Source of the DNA: Bigelowiella natans CCMP2755
Lineage: Eukaryota > Protista > Cercozoa
DNA length: 64,000 nt
Assembly: GCA_000320545.1 (NCBI GenBank)
Contig: ADNK01001072.1
Span: 33,638-97,637, forward strand
Direction: 5' to 3'
Shown here: piece by piece, positions 2,017-61,080 of the stretch
Numbering within the stretch: position 1 is the stretch's first letter
Layout: each line of letters begins with the position of its first letter
Translations under genes and position numbers: made by a program
Notes under the pieces: generated by a model
What the model saw: the letters and a program-made list of their open reading frames with translations, nothing else
Database searches by the model: none
Told to the model about the DNA's origin: nothing

Positions 2017-2448
2017 TAGTTAAGTGAATGAAAGCATGATGATGGTATAGGAAAGTGCGCTGGATAACTTTATCTGCGCTATTTGATGTACATTAAAATA
2101 TATATAATGGGTTAGAAGATTTGCTGCTTTTGATGCGAACAAAGCAACCAAAGCTATAGAAAGCAACAAGGTTAGCATACATACCTAGCACGTGCGTGAG
2201 ATGGAGCTGTCGCACTTGTGGGCGCCCGCCATAAGTCATGCCCCAGCCAAGCTCTAATAAACACTTGGCCTCGCACCCATAGCTAGATAGTGATGCATAG
2301 TGGATACATCTCCATTGCAAGGCCTTCTGACACCGTAGGCACATGCACGCGCTGTGCTGCGCTAGCTTCGCAGCTAGTCTAGCTAGTGTTACAGCAGCAC
2401 ATTCGTTGGAACAATTTCACATGAGCGCACATGTCATGGGAACATGAG

Positions 2449-2800
2449 CGCACATGTCATGGGAATGCAGCAGCAAGCAAATCATCCTAGTCAATTGTTG
2501 TGACGGATGTTGCCGCAACCGGCCCGTTACGTTCCATTGGGAGCAGTTACCAAGTCGCAGTTTCGGTTGTTTGGACACGAAACGGAGGCAGTTTAGTGCA
2601 GACGACTTGGCGCGACTTCGGCCATTGGAACGGACCGACGACATGATTCAACAGCCCGTCTCATCAGGAAGCTAGGCAGCACTGCGCGACGGGCAGCTGA
2701 GCGCAGTTCATGCTGAATGTTTGAGCAAGTAGCTCATTGTTTGTTGTGCATGTGACAGGTTTTCACTTGACAACACATTGCATCGTTGATGAATCCAACG
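2449..2800 (+). repeat. ~350-bp dispersed repeat, copy A1 (direct-orientation partner at 9167-9515)
   Basis: Nearly identical to 9167-9515 (gtcatgggaatgcagcagcaagcaaatcatcc...gatgaatccaacg). Overlaps a 23-bp tandem duplication (acatgagcgcacatgtcatggga) at 2419-2465. Confidence 0.95.
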
Positions 2801-4725
2801 GATCAAGAGTCCATCACTTGCCGGTGTGCGGAGAAGCTCTCAGCTGTCAGCTGGATTGATGCAAGCTCTCCGTGAAAGTGAAGAGAATTGATGAATTCGA
2901 TGGCAAGAAGGAGGAGGCCGTGTTTTTCCTGAAGTCCACACAATCAGAAGTGCTCAGCGCAGGTCGAACGCATTGGCGAGTTCTGTTAGGCAGAGGTGTC
3001 TTCTCTGGTGTGAAGTGTGACCTGGAGTGCGACGCCACTGAAGAGGATTTCGATGCATCTTCTGATGATGGATTGGACGGTGAGTCAAGAAGGAAAAAGA
3101 ACATGCCCAAACTTGAAAAGGGATCTGACGATGAAGCTGCAAGCGACCCGCAAGAAAAGGCCAACCGGAAGAAAGCCCACAAAACTCAGCGTGCTTGCAA
3201 CAAATGCTCACAAAAGATTTGCAATGTCATCTTCTCGCGTCTCACCTCAAAGGTGTCACCTTCAATTGACCAGTGTGACATGGAGACGGGAGATGGGCCA
3301 GGGCTGCATCGGGCCCTTCAGGATGTCCATGTGGCAGGAACGGAAAATGGATTTGCAAGCATTTTCAAATTCGTCAACGTGAAGCAAGAAGGACCTTTGG
3401 CTGAACTCGAAGATTGCACCTTCAAGTTCAATCAACTGTGTCGACTGTTGGAGGAGAGGAGCAGCATCATCTCTCCGGACATTCGAAATGTGACACATTT
3501 GAATGGCTTGAGCAAAGATTTTGATTTGATCAGAGATCGCATTCGCGATGAAGGAACCTTGAACGAGTCAAGAATCGAAGACATCTTGAGACGAGTCAGG
3601 GGTGCTGCAGAAAGAAACGGAGAAAGAAAGAAGGACAAATGTGTGAAATCCATCTCCAAAAGCAACGGCCCACGGATGCTCTTGGCTCCAGATGGCAAAG
3701 ACAAGTTCAATCGGAAGCTCAAGTGTTTCAACTGCAAAAAGCATCATCCTGGCGGAGAACGCAGCTGCACAGAACCTTGTCGAATTTGCAAACAGCCTGG
3801 GCATGCCAGATGCAATTGCAAACTCAGGAACAAACAGTCGCCCCACACCCCAACGAGGGGAAATGATGCTCACTTGGCAGTTTCTCATTCGGGCAAAATG
3901 CCGAATTGGAAAGTCGGAATTTCATCTGGAGATGAAGGTCTGATTGCAGCTGATGAAGCTCTGTTCAGCAACGAGATTCACACCACATGCGTCGACAGCG
4001 GCGCTGCGAAACATTGTGTGAGCTCAGAGTTCATTGAATCACGAGCTTCAGAGGTGACGGATCACGTCACCGAGCAAGGCAGTGTTGGCACTGCTGGTGA
4101 TCAAAGGCTGGAGATTGCGGGTTCTGCCAACGTGGCAGGATTGAAAGGTGTCAAGATTGTCAAGGGTCTCAAAGCAAGTTTGGCAAGCGTTTCTGAAATG
4201 TGCAAAGAGGACAATTGCTGTCTCGCATGCAGTGCCGACAAGGTTTGGAAAACATCGAAAGACAGTCTGACCCTGCCGGACAACGCCATCTGCATCGGCA
4301 CTCGTTCGAGAGGATTGTGTGTTTGCAATTTCAGCACCTTTGAAGAGGATGCATCGGATGAAGCACATCTCACTGACAGCGCTCCTGCGAATGTGCTCTT
4401 CAAATGGCACCAGATCTTGGCACATCTGGCTCCAACAAGTTTGCACAGAGCGGTGAAAAATGGCACAATTGACATTCCAGAAATTGACCGTTTGTCTCCT
4501 GCAGAGCTGGAGAAGGCATTCAAGGAGTTTCCTGAATGCAAGACTTGTGGTGAAGCTTTTGGTGTCAAACGCAATCGTCGCACCGCGTTTCAGCGTGTGC
4601 TCGATTCAGGCAAAACTCAGGGTTGTCAAGCCGATCAGGATCTCATGTGGCCTTGGACACCGTGCTCGAAGGAGGGACATCGCGGTGCGTCATCATTTGG
4701 CTGGATTTGGGGAAATGTGGGATGA
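2801..4725 (+). mobile_element. Truncated, TpA-hypermutated Ty1/copia retrotransposon fragment (gag, protease, integrase N-terminus)
   Basis: ORF 2872-4725 has a gag zinc knuckle CRICKQPGHARCNC (CX2CX4HX4C), a copia protease motif VDSGAAKH, SLASVSEM (cf. NLLSVSQL), GLCVC (cf. GLYxL), and a pre-integrase WHQILAHL...CKTC (HHCC). It breaks off before the integrase core; no RT or RNaseH. Intronless, with no Tyr in 617 aa. Confidence 0.88.
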
Positions 4726-5192
4726 TCATTTGCATGGCAAATGACAGAGCAATCCTGACTGTGTGACCATGGACACAGCACATGTCACATGTGCATCATG
4801 TGTGTCATGTGCACGCATGTCCATTGTTGTTGAATGAACACGCACAAATGAGAACTTGAGTTCATGCATGTGTGTAGCCGATGCACGATGATGAATGGAT
4901 TGAGCTTTGAAAAAGACACAACTCAAGACAATGCAGAATGTCCGTCAAATTAGCGGATACTCATTGTAGACACGTAATGTCATACATGTATCACATATGC
5001 TATTACTATGTCTATTATGTAGCTGCTGCTTTGCATAGCTACATTAGGATGACTATTTTAAAGATTTAATCACTCCATTACATCCGTCTCATATCCATTT
5101 ACATGTAATCTTCAACATTTTACATTAAAAAATCATCTAATCATTACGGCTCAATTACGTTTATACATCAATATTTTCACGCAGCTGCAATG

Positions 5193-7509
5193 TTATATCT
5201 GCGAAATCAGCTCTGGGTTGTTTTCCAAAGAAAATGTCCACTCAAGAGCTAGAGCTACGGTAGATCCATGATTCACAACACCGTGAGCCCAAAGGTTGGG
5301 AATGAATATAAGATCGCCTTCCTCTTGCTCACATTCAATTTTACTCCTGGGATGATACTCAGCAGCGTGCTGCTGCTGTGGCCTCATTGTCCAATCTTTC
5401 ATTTTCATTTTACTGTAGACCCTCTCACTTGGAGGTAGGAGCGTCCAGCTCTTTTTGCCATACACAACAATATTAAAGGCATACATATGGTGATGCATAG
5501 GCGACCCACTTCCATCAGGACCGAGGAAGAGCTGTGTCGTAACTTTGTGCGATTTGCTTTGTAGATGCTTTGCAAATGAAGGGAAACCAAAATGCACTTT
5601 CCCATCACGAGACGAGGCTATTTCCGCCCTTCGTGCGCCCTCCTCCTCTCCTACAGGGCCTTCCTCAACGATTACTAAGTATGGGGCGGTTTCTTTCGAA
5701 TTGCTGCTGCTATTACAAGTGGACTGCCGCTGGGTGTGGTTGGAACTACCGTATTCACAAGGGATGTATCGTTTCAAATATTTTCGTACCGTCGTTCGGC
5801 GGGTGCGCAGACCATGTTTATGAGCGTATGGAATCTTACTAACCTCCACCCTTTTCCTCCCGAGGCGCGAAAGTAACCCTTTCCTACTCATTGTCGCTCT
5901 TAGTTCGTCCCACCTCTCGTGCTCCAATGCTCCCGTAACGAGCACGGGCTGAGAGCGGTACAAGAATTCCACAAGAAACCTCTCTACTGTCATATTTGCT
6001 GCTGGAATGACGGAAAAGTCGCAGCGAGCTCTTTCTTGTTTTCGATACCTATTGTCTTCCTCATCGGAGCAGCTTCCCCCTTCGCCATTTCCGATTTCCG
6101 TTCTACAGACATTTTCACGAACATCAGCATCACCCATATTCAAACTGCCGCTGTTTGGATATTTTCCATGAACTTCTTGGACAGAAGGGTCGAAGTGATC
6201 CCTAGACTCGTAACCTCTACCGAAGGAATCAAGTCTTTGCCCATTGTTTACAATTGTGAAAAGTTCATAATCATGCAAAGCTGAGTGGAGGCTTGGATAA
6301 TCCATCGGACGGTATGTTGGTAATATTGAAGGGGATGGTGATGCTAAAGAAGATCTTTCTTTTCCCTTGAGATTAGCACCATGCGAAAGGAATAACCGCA
6401 CTACCCAATGGAACCCTTCGATTGTCTAGCGTAACATATACAATCAACAAACAGACAACAACACCTTGATGAGCTATTCCCAAAGTTTTGGTTTGTGTGA
6501 AAATGTTTCATTGCGACCAAAAAGTATGAATAGTGTTAGAAAGAATAGTTTTATGTATACTGCGAATCGCAATGGGGTGAATCCTAGCGAGTCCTGGGCG
6601 TGAAGGAGAGAAGGTTCCGTTTTCAAAACAGCACTGAAGACCTAGAGAGTACAGAATCGCAGATAATGAAAATGCAAAGACCTCAAGCATTGGAAAAAGG
6701 AATCTAGTTGCCAATGACCTTCGAAAATCGAAATTTCAAAGAGCACACAATTGCTTTTCGAGAGACGGTATCCGGGCTGTGCATACCGCACGCTACAAGC
6801 TCACGTAGCGAAACATCTTTAGTGTCCTTCAATGCGTTTTCTAAAGTTGCGCCTACCTTTATTTTTTGAAACGTTAGCATTCCGTGCAAGCGTATATTGC
6901 AATTAGAACTTCTTGGTAATAGATTGATTGTGCCCCACCTTTGCTTTCAGCAAGTGCAATGAGCTGAAAGTAGCTTTGATTGACATGACGGACACCAAGA
7001 AATGTAGCACATTCCTGTTTGAAGGGGTGTCCAATAATTCAGTTCGTTTGTATAAATGCCCGCTTTCATCTAGCTGAGAATTGTATTATTATACCCAATT
7101 CCTTGCCGATGTCTGCTTTCAGTATCGTACAAGGAGAAAGCCCGGTCGTTCCCTATGCATTCTCGTAGGAAGCTTGGTTTGGCGTCGTTGCCTGAATTTG
7201 TACTTGCATTCATAACTCAATCGACTTCAACTGGTAATCCTCTTTCAATTTTCAGTCTATTACCAAGATGCTTGAGCACTTCTCTCTCTGTATGGTTGCC
7301 CTCGAGCAACATAACCAGCTCTGATCCACACCTCCAAGTTTCACGGAGGACGTGCGACTCAGACACCGTGTTCCTGAAAGATATCATTCATGGTCTGTTT
7401 GCCTGGTACACGATACAGAATCAGCCCACCTATGCGCACCACTGAGGAGAATTGGAGCCCATGCCAGCGCTGCGAGCAGCCACAAAGACCCGGAAGGGAC
7501 GCCGGTCAT
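5193..7509 (-). CDS. Signal peptide + ankyrin repeat + JmjC (cupin) protein, JMJD8-like
   Basis: ATG at 7509 begins MTGVPSGSLWLLAALAWAPILLSGAH. Ankyrin segments LHAQDSLGFTPLRFA and GFHWVVRLFLSHGANL. The large last exon encodes QPVLVTG...LFLGPDGSGSPMHHHMYAFNIVVYGKKSWTLLP...CEQEEGDLIFIPNLWAHGVVN. TAA at 5193. Confidence 0.85.
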
Positions 7510-7859
7510 CCGGCCGCGCTTACGAGTAGATAATCTCCCCTCCTCCTTTTTCTCCTTCGAGAGCGGGGATTCGGCTCGAAGCCCCGGCGGAAGAACTCCT
7601 GCAATCTTCGATCACATCCCACTCGAGACATCACCCACATGCCCCTTTCGAAATTATCACGAAACAGGTCCTATTTTCATGTCGCGTCAACATTCTTTCA
7701 CGACTAAAACAAACACTTTCAAATCGCCAAACGTCGAAAGGATCTTGCGAGCTCAGAATTGCCCTCCCCAGGCTGCTCGGAAGGAGGTTGGTGACCGCTG
7801 AGACACGTTGCTAAAATGCCACTGGGGGTAGCTTTCACTGCAAGTCTCCGGGGAAGGAA

Positions 7860-9138
7860 GAATCCAGGCCAGCAGCAAAGTTGGATGAAGGAAGGAAGGG
7901 CAGGAGGACAGCTGTTGCGCGTAAGGTGTTCACAGGCCGAGGCGCTACGTGCACAAGTAGGCAGGGGGGGGGAAGGCACGTTTGCTTCCTTTTGAAGAGT
8001 TATGTTCATTTTTGTCAAAGATTATATTTTTATTAAATCGTGCACTGCGTAATCATTCGCGAAGCTTTCGCGAATGCCGCCGCACGTGGGGCAGCACACT
8101 TCCGGTGTGCTGCCATGAGTCCCGCCGGAACCCACGTGCCTATACTGTATTAATATCTACGTTATCTATATTCTATATCCGCGACAACCCCTTTGTTGTC
8201 GCACGTGACTTGTGCTCGCGTAGTAGTACGCGCTACACAGCTGCGTGTGCACAAGCGGCTGCCTCGATTCTCTGATGATGTTTTGACCTTTTTCACATGC
8301 ATGCACCAAGTCAACTGTCATCAGGCGAAATCACCTGAAACTGCATGCATGACATCGTGCTGCAGAAGGAATGGCCGTTGTTTTTGTCTGCTCTGGCTCT
8401 GGCACGCTTGCCAGGACAGTTTTCAACGATGCGCTTGGTCACCTTTTCTGTCCTGGAGCACGCGGTGACAACACATCGCCCGTGTGTTGCACTTCGCAAT
8501 TTGCTGCACAGCAAATTGAAGGAAAGGGCAGCGTGTTGGAGTGCTTTGCACTCAATGCGCGAAGTGCATGCTTGTGGCAGCAGTGGCAACGCCGGCGGGC
8601 GTTTGCAGGCTGCGACAAGCAGTGCAGAACGGGCTGCCAATGCAGGCAGGTTCTGTGCCTGCGACAAGGCAGGACAGTGCTGCATCAGCCATGTGCCAGC
8701 AAAGGAAGTGGGCGCGTCTTCCTCAAATCTGATGCCCGTGACAAGCACCCACGGCTGGGGTGCAAGGTGCGCGGAGGGAGAGGGGGGGGGGAGGGGAACG
8801 AAGATGGTCACGTGGGGAGGGCATGCATCCACAGGTGACGTGAACATCCACAGGATGTGCAAAAACAAAGTTGCAGAAGCAAACGTTGGAGTGCTTTGCA
8901 CTCGAGAGCAGGAAGTGCGTGCTCGTGGTTGCAGCAGCAGCGACAAAGCAATGTTGCGGCGTTCTCCAGCTGCGACAAGCAACCAGCAGCACAAGTTGGT
9001 TTCAGGTGATTTTGCCTGATCATTGAGTCGTGCATGAAAAGCCACGTTGTGCGTCAACAAGAGAATCGAGGCAGCCGCTTGTGCAGCTGTCCTCCTGCCC
9101 TTCCTTCCTTCATCCAACTTTGCTGCCAGCCTGCATTC
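7860..9138. mobile_element. Non-autonomous foldback-like element with long imperfect inverted arms, largely TpA-free
   Basis: 7860-7914 plus ~8247-8342 match the reverse complement of ~8998-9138. Internal imperfect direct repeat ~8530-8620 vs ~8883-8980 (gttggagtgctttgcactc...gctgcgacaagc). No TA in 8236-9306. Confidence 0.65.
7915..8243. mobile_element. MITE-like ~330-bp insertion that retains TA
   Basis: Interrupts the left arm of the foldback element. Flanked by ACAGCTG at 7908-7914 and 8237-8243. Imperfect terminal and subterminal inverted matches (tgcgcgta/tacgcgct; gcacaagt/acttgtgc). Central hairpin cattcgcgaa-gct-ttcgcgaatg at 8054-8076. Confidence 0.5.
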
Positions 9139-9166
9139 TGCAGCGCGCCGCCCTCTGCTTCCAACA

Positions 9167-9515
9167 CGCACGTGTCATGGGAATGCAGCAGCAAGCAAAT
9201 CATCCTGGTCAATTGTTGTGACGGATGTTGCCGCAATCGGCCCGTTCCATTGGGAGCAGTCACCAAGTCGCAGTTTCGGTTGTTTGGACACGAAACGGAG
9301 GCAGTTTAGTGCAGACGACTTGGCGCGACTTCGGCCATTGGAACGGACCGACGACATGATTCAACAGCCCGTCTCATCAGGAAGCTAGGCAGCACTGCGC
9401 GACGGGCAGCTGAGCGCAGTTCATGCTGAATGTTTGAGCAAGTAGCTCATTGTTTGTTGTGCATGTGACAGGTTTTTGCTTGACAATGCATTGCACATCG
9501 TTGATGAATCCAACG
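9167..9515 (+). repeat. ~350-bp dispersed repeat, copy A2
   Basis: Direct repeat of 2449-2800. Most substitutions between the copies are TA/TG, TA/CA or CA/TG pairs. Confidence 0.95.
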
Positions 9516-47854: not shown

Positions 47855-48060
47855 CAAACTATTCCAGGTTCTCCCGGTCTATGGCAACACGTGGGATTCC
47901 GAAGTTGTTGGAGGGAGAAACCTCTTGAACCAATCGTTTCAGGTAGATAAACAATAGTGTGTATAAATAGTCTTCGAGATCGCCAGCGGTTGTGTTTTCC
48001 TGCCTTACAACGACTTCTTTTCGATGGACTCGTAAGCTGTGAAGGGGGGAGCTAACATCC

Positions 48061-49130
48061 TTCCATCTCTTTTTTTTTGCTTTTTTCAGCAGTTCCGCTT
48101 GATGGAGAATTGCCTTGTCGCACCATGAAAATCAAAGCATTTTCGTCCCATTTTGCACACTTTCCCGTTCTCTCTCTTTCTTCCCGATGCCAAATTGTTT
48201 GCTCACTGAAACCAGTTCGAGGCACTGCATTTTGCACGCTGCAAGTGTCTTGCAACACTTTGGAAATGTAGTTTTTCATCATTGTTTCATTGTTTTCATT
48301 GTTTCATTGAAACCAGTTCGAGGCACTGCATTTTGCACGCTGCAAGTGTCTTGCAACACTTTGGAAATGTGGTTTTTCATCATTGTTTCATTGTTTCATT
48401 GTTTCATTGATCACGCGCACTTTGCCGTCGTGCAACATGCTTGACACACATGACACACACTTTGGAAATGTAGTCGATCGTCGAAGTTTGTTTCTTTCTT
48501 TCCGGAAGGTTTGTTGCAACATGTGTGTCATTCATCCATGACAATTTGTGCGATGAACAAGAAACCCGCACGTGTTCGAAGTTCGTGTGCAGAACACGAC
48601 AGCACGAAAATTGACATCATGGCTGACAGCGTGGTGTGCGGTGGTGGCCAACGACATGCACGTCGCGTTGTGTGTTGCTGTGCGCTAGTGCGCACAGTTG
48701 GACAGCACATTGCTAGATTTATATGGACATCATGTGATTGAGCAGCCGCGTGCCGAGAATTTGTGCCAAAATGACGTGTTCACGGACACACACATGCTGG
48801 CATGCATCAACCACACACTTGCTAGCTTGCTGGCATTGTGCACGCAACAAGTGCATGGCATGCATGCACTACTAGCAATTTTGAGTCGCACAAAATACAC
48901 CAGCACAGCGCTCATTTTGCAAGCAACTGTGAGGCGAGCGACACATTGATCGAGGCCAATGACTGCAACAATGACATGCACACACAGCGTGTGCTGCAAC
49001 ATCGTTGCCCGCCTGCATGAGATGCGCGCAATGACACTGCTAGACTGACTGACAAAATCAATGTGAAAGAAATGAAAATGTACACATGTAGTGATGTGTT
49101 GCTGTCACAAACACCATCATTGCGATTAAA
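48061..49130. other. TpA-depleted intergenic tract 3
   Basis: Very few TAs over ~1.07 kb, mostly TAG/CTAG (e.g. 48269, 48471, ~48686, ~48714, ~48823, ~49041). Saturated with TGCA, CATG and CACA. Confidence 0.9.
48207..48409. repeat. 101-bp tandem duplication
   Basis: Units start at 48207 and 48308. They differ at aatgTAgttt (48269) vs aatgTGgttt (48370). A partial third copy lies at ~48458-48473. Confidence 0.95.
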
Positions 49131-49321: not shown

Positions 49322-49355
<34 letters not shown>

Positions 49356-49364
49356 AATGTATAA

Positions 49365-49400
<36 letters not shown>

Positions 49401-59564: not shown

Positions 59565-59789
59565 TTGTGCACCTCCACAGTCCACAGTGCAATACACATG
59601 CGTCTTCATGTTTCTCAAGTCGCAGGTAACAATTGCTACCCTATTTTTTTTGTCATTCCACGGAACAACGTAACGGAAAACGCCGAGCGCGCTCAGAGGG
59701 GACACAAATGCAAAAATATCTTTGTCGCTAATTGCTATTCGCATGTAATTCACCGAGAAATGATCGGAAGTGCGCAAAATATGCATGTA

Positions 59790-61080
59790 CCCCAACATGG
59801 AACTGTCAAATCTCGAGAATTCGCCGAAATTTTGTTTTTCGCTCCAATTCTCGTCGGATTCGCCTGGCAATTCGTGCACGAAGTCTCCCGGACATCGACT
59901 TTCGAACCCGACTTGCCGCATTCGAATCTGATGCGCGGAAGCTGAGATCCAGACATCGCCCCCCCCCCTTGCCCCTGTTTGGATTTTGCGTGTTCACTTT
60001 TGGTTTTTCCGACGTTTCAACACCTCCAGCACGTGGAGGAGGTCGCTTCGCTTCGTTTGAGCCCTTGCTCAACTTCGTCCAAAACTTGAGTTTGCATCTG
60101 CATTTTCAACGTGATGGAAAGTCACATGTCGAAAATTGCAGATGCAAACTCGAAGCGCAGCGATCTCCTCTGCGTGCTGGATGAATTGTTGACATGTCGA
60201 GAAAACAAAAATCAAAACGTGAACATTGAATTGTGGAAGGGTTGGCATTGGGGGGGGCATCCCCCCTCCCAATGTCACTTCTTTTCATTTGGTGTGGATG
60301 GCTCGGCACACCCGACGATCCTTTCACAGAATCCCTCTTGGGATCACTTCGTTCATTCACTCTTTCTTTGTTTCTTTCTTGAGAGCGCGATCGACAACCA
60401 GAATGCTCTGCGATGCGGATTTGCCTTCTACCATGTGCTGCCACAGCCTGCGCAACACGACCATCTTTCTTTCTTTCGGGTGTTCTTCACACGCAAACGT
60501 GCAGAGTGTCGCTCACTCGATGTAATAGACACAGTAATATGACATATATAATATATATCGTATTACAATCGATCATTGCTCGCACATGCATGCATTGTGC
60601 ACCACATGCATTGCACGTCGCACGAAGCTAGCAGGAAGCTGTGCTGAGACAGCACACGCAGTTTCTGCAGGTTGTTGATGCAGCTGTCAGCACTCTACTG
60701 TCTTGCTGTGCCATGACGTGCTGCCACGACATCTAGAGATGTGTGCATGCTGCTCATCTACTAGCGCTGTGCATGCAAGACGGATGCTGTTGATCAATTG
60801 AATTTGTTCAATGCATGTGTGTGTGCACCACCTTCTCATTTGCATCTGCTGAGCTTTAGAGCCCATGCTAGCATGGGTGCAACAAATGAGTTGTCTAGTT
60901 GTGAGCCATGATTGGCGCAGCTATGTACCACATTCGAATTCCACAACATGAACATAGGCAATGTTCAGACGCACACTACAGTGCTTGTGTCTTGTGCTCG
61001 AAATTGGTTGGTGCCATGCACACAGCATCCCACGCTCTGACAAATACCATCATGTATGATTCTTGAGAAACATTCAACAA
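59790..61080. other. TpA-depleted intergenic tract 4, with a short TA-rich island at ~60523-60565
   Basis: One TA (ctac, 60429) in 59790-60522. In 60570-61080 the surviving TAs are mostly CTAG/CTA/TAG. Confidence 0.9.

Follow-up and report, generated by a model that had tools for sequence, protein, structure and literature searches.

The window, the whole 64,000-nucleotide stretch of Bigelowiella natans DNA that was analyzed, contains a TA-free core flanked by dispersed repeats, an expressed host gene on the minus strand, and further TA-poor tracts. The features are as follows.

2398 to 2938, plus strand: multi-copy 5′ repeat (leader or putative LTR-like), with genomic copies; TA depletion starts here
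2872 to 4725, plus strand: 617-aa open frame, probable gag-protease-integrase N-terminus (motifs, BLASTP to the C2101 ORF, alignment to foreign copia proteins)
2988 to 4874, no strand: TA-free core (dinucleotide counts, two DNA runs); interior single-copy at the DNA level
4686 to 4827, plus strand: repeat containing the end of the ORF and low-complexity CATG/TGTG/CACA sequence (83% identity to C1606, 72% to C1497)
4827 to 5020, plus strand: dispersed repeat, partly mutated margin (nine paralogues, 74-91% identical)
5078 to 7938, minus strand: expressed, spliced JmjC/cupin host gene with normal TA (Pfam Cupin_8, E=1e-16, and JmjC; RNA contigs)
8234 to 9515, no strand: second TA-poor tract, multi-copy repeats (8235-9306 TA-less, rho(CA+TG) 1.72; copy of the 5′ repeat at its end, 9162-9515)
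48053 to 49041, no strand: third TA-poor tract (10 TA, rho TA 0.14, rho(CA+TG) 1.87)

In the core at 2988-4874 (1887 bp), bounded by TAs at 2987 and 4875, no TA was present, compared with 120 predicted from base composition. The original prediction had placed this void at 2989-4874, with ~118 TAs expected, and was reproduced almost to the base. Given the TA rate of the window itself, the chance of a TA-less core of this length was ~8e-47. TG and CA were each elevated ~1.6-fold (186 vs 115 and 184 vs 117 expected, respectively), and their joint surplus of 138 was approximately equal to the TA deficit. CpG occurred 79 times, with an observed/expected ratio of 0.70 compared with 0.81 window-wide. 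The values of rho TA and rho(CA+TG) were 0.00 and 1.59 in the core, 0.12 and 1.58 in the domain at 2398-5020, and 0.75 and 1.26 in the window, and the GC content was 0.49 in the tract vs 0.38-0.46 in the flanks. The core and the whole domain both show TpA depletion with CpA and TpG enrichment, the footprint by which Mettrop et al. 2026 recognize hypermutated DNA.

The drop in TA begins at ~2400, with 1-3 TAs per 100 bp there and 0-3 per 100 bp over the 5′ repeat, and the DNA from 4875 to ~5020 is again only partly depleted; TA-rich DNA is found from ~4950, with 11-15 TAs per 100 bp at 5001-5200. The affected domain begins with repeat-derived DNA, fades over ~150 bp, and ends ~200 bp from the 3′ end of the expressed JmjC/cupin gene, which is spanned by RNA contigs at 5078-7938 and contains six CT..AC introns (GT..AG on the minus strand). 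A TA-rich 3′ UTR of the element had been proposed from ~4950; the TA richness was confirmed, but the DNA consists of the remainder of a repeat and the 3′ end of this minus-strand gene rather than a 3′ UTR of the element.

The tract was recovered in two independent DNA runs, X1 (2025) and X5 (2021), each of which covers 2848-4725 in a single 1878-bp contig without any difference. The depth on the tract was 119 (X1) and 54 (X5), and that on the neighboring gene was 112 and 59-69, which indicates single-copy depth. The exact agreement of such contigs from different years refutes an assembly or sequencing artefact as the origin of the tract, and we regard its probability as negligible. No new mutations were detected at the locus in the single-copy part of the two runs, as judged from assembled contigs in which almost no TA targets are left. 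Variants at 2431-2595 and 5024-5075 were read as paralogues because these stretches are multi-copy and had raised depth. On the tract, RNA contigs of the locus were absent and raw reads of RNA nearly so, while the neighboring gene was covered; the data behind this silence are the assembled RNA contigs and 6% of a single run of raw RNA reads.

The 617-aa ORF contains a gag zinc knuckle, an aspartic-protease DSGA motif, and an integrase N-terminal HHCC zinc finger, as assigned from motifs and alignment, and ends before the integrase core and RT. As had been claimed, it is Tyr-less and rich in Cys and His (Tyr, 0 of 617 aa; Cys, 29, 4.7%; His, 19, 3.1%); a neighboring host exon has 4.0% Tyr and 1.5% Cys. 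Pfam gave no match to this ORF, even at E<=10, and a match in the ORF of paralogue L017 was discarded as chance-level only. BLASTP against the ORF of C2101 gave E=6e-21, and the latter ORF runs on into one carrying an RVT_2 domain (E=3.7e-28); the copia label of the window ORF derives from homology to this RVT_2-bearing paralogue. In alignment with foreign copia proteins, five of five conserved Cys and four of five conserved His were matched. Judged by these alignments, the ORF is probably a truncated Ty1/copia-like fragment. The full gag-protease-integrase-RT (RVT_2) order was found only in the C2101 paralogue, the window copy stopping after the HHCC finger. No LTR pair was found, the left (2398-2938) and right (4827-5020) repeats being unrelated to each other, and no primer-binding site was recognized at the window copy. 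A mobile origin of the target is supported by the homology to the RVT_2 paralogue, with Ty1/copia polyproteins as best foreign matches, and by the dispersed repeats at both ends.

Among the three conserved-Tyr columns between the window ORF and the N-termini of foreign copia proteins, one was informative: the conserved Tyr is Cys in the window ORF (the first Cys of GLCVC) and His in paralogue L017, in agreement with the proposed derivation of GLCVC from a Tyr-containing motif. The Tyr test was therefore carried by the RT-bearing paralogue. This related element lies in TA-poor DNA that extends over at least 16 kb and holds five TAs, and its ORFs contain zero or one Tyr, compared with 2-3.9% Tyr in foreign copia homologues. 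At 14 columns with conserved Tyr in foreign copia proteins, it has His (seven), Cys (four), Phe (two), or Ile (one), with conserved Trp, Pro, Gly, and Asp largely retained. The RT box of copia elements is usually YVDD; that of C2101 is HADD, and its gag-PR-IN and IN-RT regions lie in different frames. Intact or active copies equally free of TA and Tyr would refute hypermutation; the C2101 element lacks TA and nearly all Tyr but is broken (HADD, split frames), so it does not count as such a copy.

The direction of substitution was read from the repeated ends of the tract. The 5′ repeat at 2398-2938 extends over the first 22 ORF codons and has copies in C1679 (93% over 549 bp), at 9162-9515 of the window (96%), and in C417 (89%). 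In the alignment of these copies (A2), 36 of 60 mismatches were TA-type and eight were transversions; in alignment A1, TA-type changes accounted for 96 of 177 mismatches. The excess of TA to TG or CA changes expected among copies was thus observed at the repeated ends. Variable TA-family columns, holding TA, TG, or CA at one dinucleotide, numbered 42 (20 in A1 and 22 in A2). For example, L011 retains ATATATAT in A1, and mutated copies have CATGTGTGCATG instead. Where low-complexity sequence of the CATG/TGTG/CACA type occurs, the unmutated copy of a paralogous repeat shows TA-rich ATATAT runs. In the margin repeat, the inferred TA sites before 4875 are all converted, and beyond 4875 converted and retained sites are mixed; 7 of 20 are retained in the window copy, 10 of 18 in L011, and none in L006, L009, L012, and L015. 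These sequence comparisons, all of them descriptive, show through the paralogues that the change runs from TA to TG or CA. No second copy of the interior at 2939-4685 was found in a DNA search of the genome, so ancestral TA there would follow from the composition, the Tyr-free frame, and the 23%-identical paralogue.

TG/CA alternation by itself is also compatible with CpG decay; only the existence of paralogues that bear TA, together with the complete absence of TA from the tract, separates the two.

The two strands were affected independently, at similar frequency and with the hits randomly ordered. In the core, the order of TG and CA was random (z +0.83 in the runs test; p 0.77 for heterogeneity among bins), and runs tests on the three tracts gave z +0.8, +0.6, and +2.1, compared with z -13 in ordinary window DNA. 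Such random interleaving fits action on both DNA strands. Because no TA remains, every TpA context is a substrate. The ORF contains 0 in-frame TGA codons, whereas TGA occurs 18 and 29 times in the two alternative frames. TGA can be obtained solely from TAA and T to C changes never give a stop, so the process cannot make in-frame stops. From the genetic code, mutated genes should have Tyr replaced by Cys or His and lose further TA-containing codons while keeping a long open "ghost" frame.

De novo TpA to TpG/CpA hypermutation in B. natans was reported by Mettrop et al. (bioRxiv 10.64898/2026.01.13.699255, April 2026) from mutation accumulation (MA). In two viral inserts, 230 of 231 de novo mutations were A to G or T to C and were assigned to TpA by the authors, and the mutation rate in the inserts was ~1000-fold over background. 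The preprint also includes a genome scan for TpA-depleted clusters, and its TpA-depleted CDS were enriched in RT and DDE domains. By hand count, Table S2 of the preprint contains 91 A to G and 119 T to C changes; hand runs tests on lines 19, 3, and 1 gave z of about -1.2, -1.2, and +0.3, with no significant strand coordination. The base 3′ of the mutated A was T in 67, A in 67, C in 52, and G in 20 cases, as raw counts without background frequencies. The process is already known, and credit for its discovery belongs to this preprint, so the novelty of the defence system implied by the original prediction, which had itself left that point to a literature search, does not stand. The two cases share the organism, TpA to TpG/CpA change on both strands, TpA depletion with CpA and TpG enrichment, and, by implication, the target class. 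They differ in that the preprint follows ongoing mutation in giant-virus and virophage inserts that are still TA-rich or half-depleted, whereas the locus described here is a saturated 2.6-kb LTR-retrotransposon fragment. In its text, the preprint says nothing of copia, LTRs, tyrosine, or stop codons, and its cluster rule (three consecutive 1-kb windows passing both cut-offs) may overlook a tract as short as 2.6 kb. Our additions are the saturated LTR-retrotransposon case, the edge ~200 bp off an expressed gene, the random TG/CA mix, the deduction that no stops arise, and at least five TadA-like loci.

These results make it very probable that 2398 to ~5020 is dead, quiet transposon DNA saturated by host TpA-specific hypermutation (TpA to TpG/CpA). 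A dead element composed of the multi-copy 5′ repeat, the truncated Ty1/copia-like frame, and part of another dispersed repeat would lie between host genes, and hypermutation of the kind known in situ on integrated foreign DNA would have run to saturation on it. The proposal that, in silenced transposon DNA, a process running counter to RIP changes TpA to TpG/CpA on either strand is supported by the paralogues, the His and Cys replacements in C2101, and the mutation-accumulation data. TadA/ADAT tRNA adenosine-34 deaminases naturally act on U33-A34, a U-A step. The candidate enzyme would deaminate adenine in DNA and have the TadA/ADAT fold, and targeting may occur via chromatin state or small RNA rather than copy number. 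A search for such deaminases, as the original prediction had suggested, revealed at least five TadA-like loci in the genome (C980, C3623, C3286, C1679, and C3588), together with an ADAT1-like locus (C2414). The U-A substrate step of TadA/ADAT2-ADAT3 is alike, and the B. natans enzymes are only candidates for such activity on DNA. Amphioxus ADAT2 has been reported to edit DNA (cited in bioRxiv 10.64898/2026.01.13.699255).

TpA is self-complementary, so the attacked base, A or T, is not readable from the footprint. The same pattern would arise if the thymine of TpA were attacked, for instance through oxidation to 5-hydroxymethyluracil or by another modification that leads to its being copied as C, with no adenine deamination. 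T to C on one strand is A to G on the other, as in the near-equal TG (186) and CA (184) counts here and the 91 A to G and 119 T to C changes in the preprint. In dinoflagellate DNA, 5hmU is enriched at TpA and TpC, which also counts for thymine attack. On the other hand, no Tet_JBP domain was found in a six-frame genome search (run without a positive control, on intron-rich genes), and the natural action of TadA/ADAT enzymes on a U-A step, with several TadA-like loci in the genome, favors adenine. We consider thymine attack unlikely.

Hypermutation of DNA in place also has to be weighed against explanations in which the chromosome was not the substrate or TA was never lost. RNA-level A-to-I editing of the element transcript by an ADAR- or ADAT-like enzyme, fixed via reverse transcription and reinsertion, would suit a retrotransposon, and RNA adenosine deaminases favor U 5′ of the edited A (noted in bioRxiv 10.64898/2026.01.13.699255). 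However, it predicts TG on the sense strand only, whereas TG and CA are equal and randomly mixed; the footprint extends to the non-coding flanks, to short dispersed repeats, and to tandem units; no RNA was detected on the tract; and in the preprint, integrated DNA-virus sequence that is single-copy mutates in situ. Editing of RNA is accordingly very improbable. TA avoidance by selection or ancestry, such as dodging a TA-cutting nuclease or a TA-targeting transposase, would explain why all relatives found in the genome are TA-poor as well and why some TA-poor short repeats are 97-100% identical over many contigs. It is contradicted for the tract ends and the C2101 relative, where lightly mutated paralogues hold TA exactly at the TG/CA positions of others and conserved Tyr has become His or Cys, with an HADD RT box and 2-3.9% Tyr in foreign homologues; moreover, de novo TpA events have been observed (preprint). 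We therefore hold TA avoidance to be just as improbable as RNA editing.

The footprint recurs elsewhere in the window. The repeats of tract 2 had 687 candidates genome-wide on first look, and 8204-9166 of the window is 99.3% identical to contig C105 (4360 bp), which is TA-poor over its entire length (rho TA 0.08) and corresponds to scaffold 226 of the preprint, where it forms the whole cluster; the 963-bp TA-free block is thus 99.3% identical between the window and scaffold 226. In tract 3, 48203-48410 comprises two tandem copies of a dispersed ~104-bp unit that has at most one TA and is 97-100% identical across at least 20 contigs. A fourth tract (59789-60428) was rejected as an instance of the same footprint; it is TA-less but shows no surplus of CA+TG (rho 1.19), and it is foldback-like. 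An insert at 7913-8248, which adjoins TA-free tract 2, is very high copy, TA-rich, transcribed, and untouched. The window yielded no RNA genes in Rfam or tRNA scans, and Rfam miRNA matches at 7800-8350 were at chance level only.

The process resembles fungal RIP in introducing dinucleotide-specific transitions at the DNA level into repeated or foreign DNA, leaving a skewed footprint, and leaking into the flanks. RIP changes C to T mainly at CpA, makes TpA and stops, lowers GC, and needs duplication and a sexual cycle, whereas here A:T is changed to G:C at TpA, no stop is possible, GC rises, and single-copy DNA is hit. In further contrast to RIP, the very high-copy TA-rich insert at 7913-8248 is unaffected, and the MA lines of the preprint were clonal cultures. 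RIP was rejected for the tract because of the reverse direction, the absence of TA, the GC content (0.49 vs 0.38-0.46 in the flanks), and the absence of in-frame stops. Targeting would not follow copy number or transcription as such, given that the untouched insert is both high-copy and transcribed. ADAR hyper-editing and APOBEC3 likewise produce deaminase-type clustered transitions against selfish nucleic acids, and ADAR favors U before the edited A, but they act on RNA or single-stranded cDNA in strand-biased runs, whereas here chromosomal DNA is changed in random strand order. Editing of the ADAR/APOBEC type was rejected because strand-biased runs were not observed (TG 186 vs CA 184; z +0.8, +0.6, and +2.1).

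The locus is a clean example of the end state, in which LTR-retrotransposon DNA is hit to completion and the domain stops near an expressed host gene. As a genome defence, TpA-directed A:T to G:C hypermutation works in the reverse direction of RIP, and if a DNA adenine deaminase is responsible, it would be a natural counterpart to engineered adenine base editors. We tentatively raise the possibility, doubtful at present, that saturation is an escape state, as TpA-less DNA is no longer a substrate and a stop-free process leaves "ghost" frames; the ~104-bp unit in at least 20 contigs and the 963-bp block at 99.3% identity hint that TA-poor DNA is still multiplying. If so, TA-free non-autonomous elements may gain a selective advantage under the defence, and many of the 324 TpA-depleted "genes" without annotation in the gene set may have originated from it. 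For annotation of the B. natans genome, long TA-free, Tyr-free ORFs should be taken as relics, not genes.

The original prediction had pointed to a long stretch lacking TA where ~118 were expected. This was confirmed by the dinucleotide count of the window: a TA at 2987 is followed by the next at 4875, and no TA occurs in the 1887 bases between them, with ~120 expected by composition. A gap this long has a probability of ~8e-47 at the TA rate of the window. TG and CA were both elevated in this tract (186 vs 115 expected and 184 vs 117 expected, respectively), and their combined surplus of 138 is about equal to the number of TA missing. CpG observed/expected was 0.70 in the tract vs 0.81 in the window. 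TA depletion sets in at ~2400 (2398) and is again partial from 4875 to ~5020. The tract was also compared with sequencing runs, and the DNA runs of 2021 and 2025 each gave a 1878-bp contig over 2848-4725 with no differences from the window, at the depth of the adjoining single-copy gene. This exact match in two independent runs at single-copy depth contradicts an artefact.

Features at the TA-free tract (coordinates; strand; description)
2398-2938; +; dispersed repeat, matching three other places including window 9162-9515
2872-4725; +; ORF of 617 aa with a CX2CX4HX4C knuckle, DSGA, and an H..H..C..C integrase finger
4686-4827; +; dispersed repeat, unrelated to the other end repeats
4827-5020; +; dispersed repeat, unrelated to the other end repeats

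The ORF lacks Tyr altogether, and its Cys and His contents are 4.7% and 3.1%, in agreement with the earlier reading of a Tyr-free frame with many Cys and His. A Pfam search of this ORF gave no match. It aligns with an ORF on another B. natans contig, C2101 (E=6e-21), which runs on, in a different frame, as an 866-aa ORF carrying RVT_2 (E=3.7e-28) whose closest foreign relatives are Ty1/copia polyproteins. A DNA search across the genome for a second copy of the interior (2939-4685) found none, and no matching LTR pair flanks the locus. Based on the C2101/RVT_2 homology, the end repeats, and the single-copy interior, the locus is read from its sequence as a copia-like fragment that is truncated and lies nested within a group of other repeats.

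The C2101 element lies inside a stretch in which only 5 TA occur over at least 16 kb (G000:C2101:36000-51900; loci L020 and L021), and its ORFs contain 0-1 Tyr. This interval comprises a copia-like gag-PR-IN region, then IN-RT in another frame, and additional long open frames on both strands with no Tyr and no Pfam match. Foreign copia proteins contain 2-3.9% Tyr. At the 14 columns in which at least 60% of the full-length foreign copia proteins have Tyr, the C2101 element has His (7), Cys (4), Phe (2), or Ile (1), and most of the conserved Trp, Pro, Gly, and Asp residues are retained. The copia RT catalytic box is Y-V-D-D; that of the C2101 element is L-H-A-D-D. In the gag-PR-IN region, one conserved-Tyr column is Cys in the window ORF (the first Cys of the GLCVC motif noted earlier) and His in its paralogue L017.

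We also compared copies of the end repeats. In their alignments, 42 dinucleotide columns vary among TA, TG, CA, and occasionally CG, and TA-type changes account for 36 of the 60 mismatches in the first alignment and 96 of the 177 in the second. The L011 copy is lightly altered, with TA kept at 10 of 18 sites, and in copies L006, L009, L012, and L015 all sites are converted. The window copy keeps TA at 7 of 20 sites, every one at or past 4875. ATATAT runs of L011 stand where the converted copies have CATG or TGTG, which explains why 4760-4830 is of low complexity and rich in CATG. CpG decay was rejected because it could yield TG/CA alternation but neither TA-bearing copies nor complete TA loss.

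Other TA-poor tracts in the window (coordinates; description)
8235-9306; tract 2, rho TA 0, rho(CA+TG) 1.72
48054-49040; tract 3, rho TA 0.14, rho(CA+TG) 1.87

Most genome loci similar to the ends of the first tract or to tracts 2 and 3 carry TA-poor islands of 1 kb to >3 kb. The segment 59789-60428 was set aside as a further tract, being TA-free but without CA+TG excess (rho 1.19). This 640-bp segment has a CpG observed/expected of 1.10, frequent TCGA, and a foldback-like layout whose arms carry C-runs and G-runs; a relative on contig C1458 (L045) has no TA over 3.1 kb. It does not clearly reflect the same process, and one idea is double conversion of TA to CG. At the edge of tract 2, a 336-bp, TA-rich, hairpin-rich insert (7913-8248) is intact. 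Its summed DNA-run depth is ~5e5 vs ~110 for single-copy DNA and is enormous in RNA runs too, some DNA contigs connect 7912 straight to 8248, and no Rfam family matched. The insert probably represents a MITE-like element that is transcribed, very abundant, and untouched by hypermutation. A ~104-bp unit with at most 1 TA occurs as two tandem copies at 48203-48410 and singly in at least 20 contigs (L049-L068); the copies are 97-100% identical, and their flanks are unrelated. The unit is either a short, TA-poor element that has spread recently or a functional element that has been conserved. Just outside tract 3, at 49324-49397, two microsatellites, (CA)15 and (TA)14.5, are 15 bp apart.

TpA hypermutation is already known from the same species and genome. 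In a B. natans mutation-accumulation experiment (Mettrop et al., bioRxiv 10.64898/2026.01.13.699255, 14 April 2026), two viral inserts, one from a giant virus (186 kb) and one from a virophage (25 kb), received 231 of the 302 new point mutations in the nucleus, at a rate ~1000-fold over background and confined to some lines. All but one of these (230/231) were transitions, A->G or T->C, that the authors assign to TpA; four T->C rows of their Table S2 have an ATG or ATT context. The same preprint reports 324 predicted CDS that are depleted in TpA and in which RT and DDE domains are overrepresented, as well as 124 clusters depleted in TpA and enriched in CpA+TpG, one being the whole of "scaffold 226 (4360 bp)," and proposes an ADAT2-like adenine deaminase. 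Contig C105 is exactly 4360 bp long, has a rho TA of 0.08, and is 99.3% identical to window 8204-9166. Our literature search found the process described only by Mettrop et al., and nothing is said in their text about copia, LTR, tyrosine, or stop codons. The original prediction of a TpA->TpG/CpA process on transposon DNA is supported by TA-bearing paralogues, by the Tyr->His/Cys columns, and by mutation accumulation in B. natans.

It is very probable that this known hypermutation, at work on the resident DNA of a dead transposon, left the tract as its footprint. Along the three tracts, TG and CA follow each other in random order (runs z +0.8, +0.6, and +2.1, vs -13 for ordinary window DNA; bin heterogeneity p 0.77 and 0.50), which argues against retro-transcript editing and processive single-strand deamination; many rounds could have blurred strand-coordinated runs. 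Within single lines of Table S2 (19, 3, and 1), hand counts of the new mutations, spaced at roughly 4 kb, agreed with this, at z of ~-1.2, -1.2, and +0.3. Among context classes in the giant-virus insert, TAT (34/33), TAA (32/35), and TAC (22/30) were balanced and TAG/CTA was lopsided (3 A->G in TAG vs 17 T->C in CTA), these being small hand tallies without background frequencies. Editing at the RNA level and a native avoidance of TA are both highly improbable, and an artefact still more so, as strand symmetry, TA-bearing paralogues, and the reads contradict them.

For the hypermutation of resident DNA, the leading chemistry would be adenine deamination by a TadA/ADAT-fold enzyme. Six CDA-fold loci were found in the genome, five of them TadA-like exon fragments scoring below the family cut-off and one resembling dCMP deaminase; there is one ADAT1-like locus. 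Attack on the thymine of TpA instead is unlikely, and would leave an identical sequence since TpA is self-complementary; a Tet_JBP search of the genome, run without a positive control, gave no match.

The onset of depletion coincides with the beginning of repeat-derived DNA (2398), and depletion fades within the right repeat, ending roughly 200 bp before 5078, the 3' end of an expressed, spliced JmjC/cupin gene. This Cupin_8 gene (5078-7938, minus strand) has six short introns of 56-135 bp, as judged from RNA-contig joints. RNA contigs and raw RNA reads cover the gene and leave the tract uncovered, a silence judged from limited data. Copy number is probably not the trigger of hypermutation, because the single-copy interior is converted and the high-depth, TA-rich insert at 7913-8248 is unconverted beside tract 2.

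The locus adds an LTR retrotransposon in which the process has reached its end state of saturation; none of the ~120 expected TA remain, which indicates that every TpA context is a substrate. TpA conversion should destroy TATA-like and AATAAA-like signals. By the genetic code, neither A->G after T nor T->C before A can turn a sense codon into TAA, TAG, or TGA, and these changes can open stops (TAA or TAG to CAA, CAG, or TGG). As expected, the ORF at 2872-4725 has no in-frame TGA, with 18 and 29 in the remaining two frames. A long open frame that is free of TA is thus no evidence of function in this genome, and stop-free conversion may account for many of the TpA-depleted "CDS" that lack annotation.
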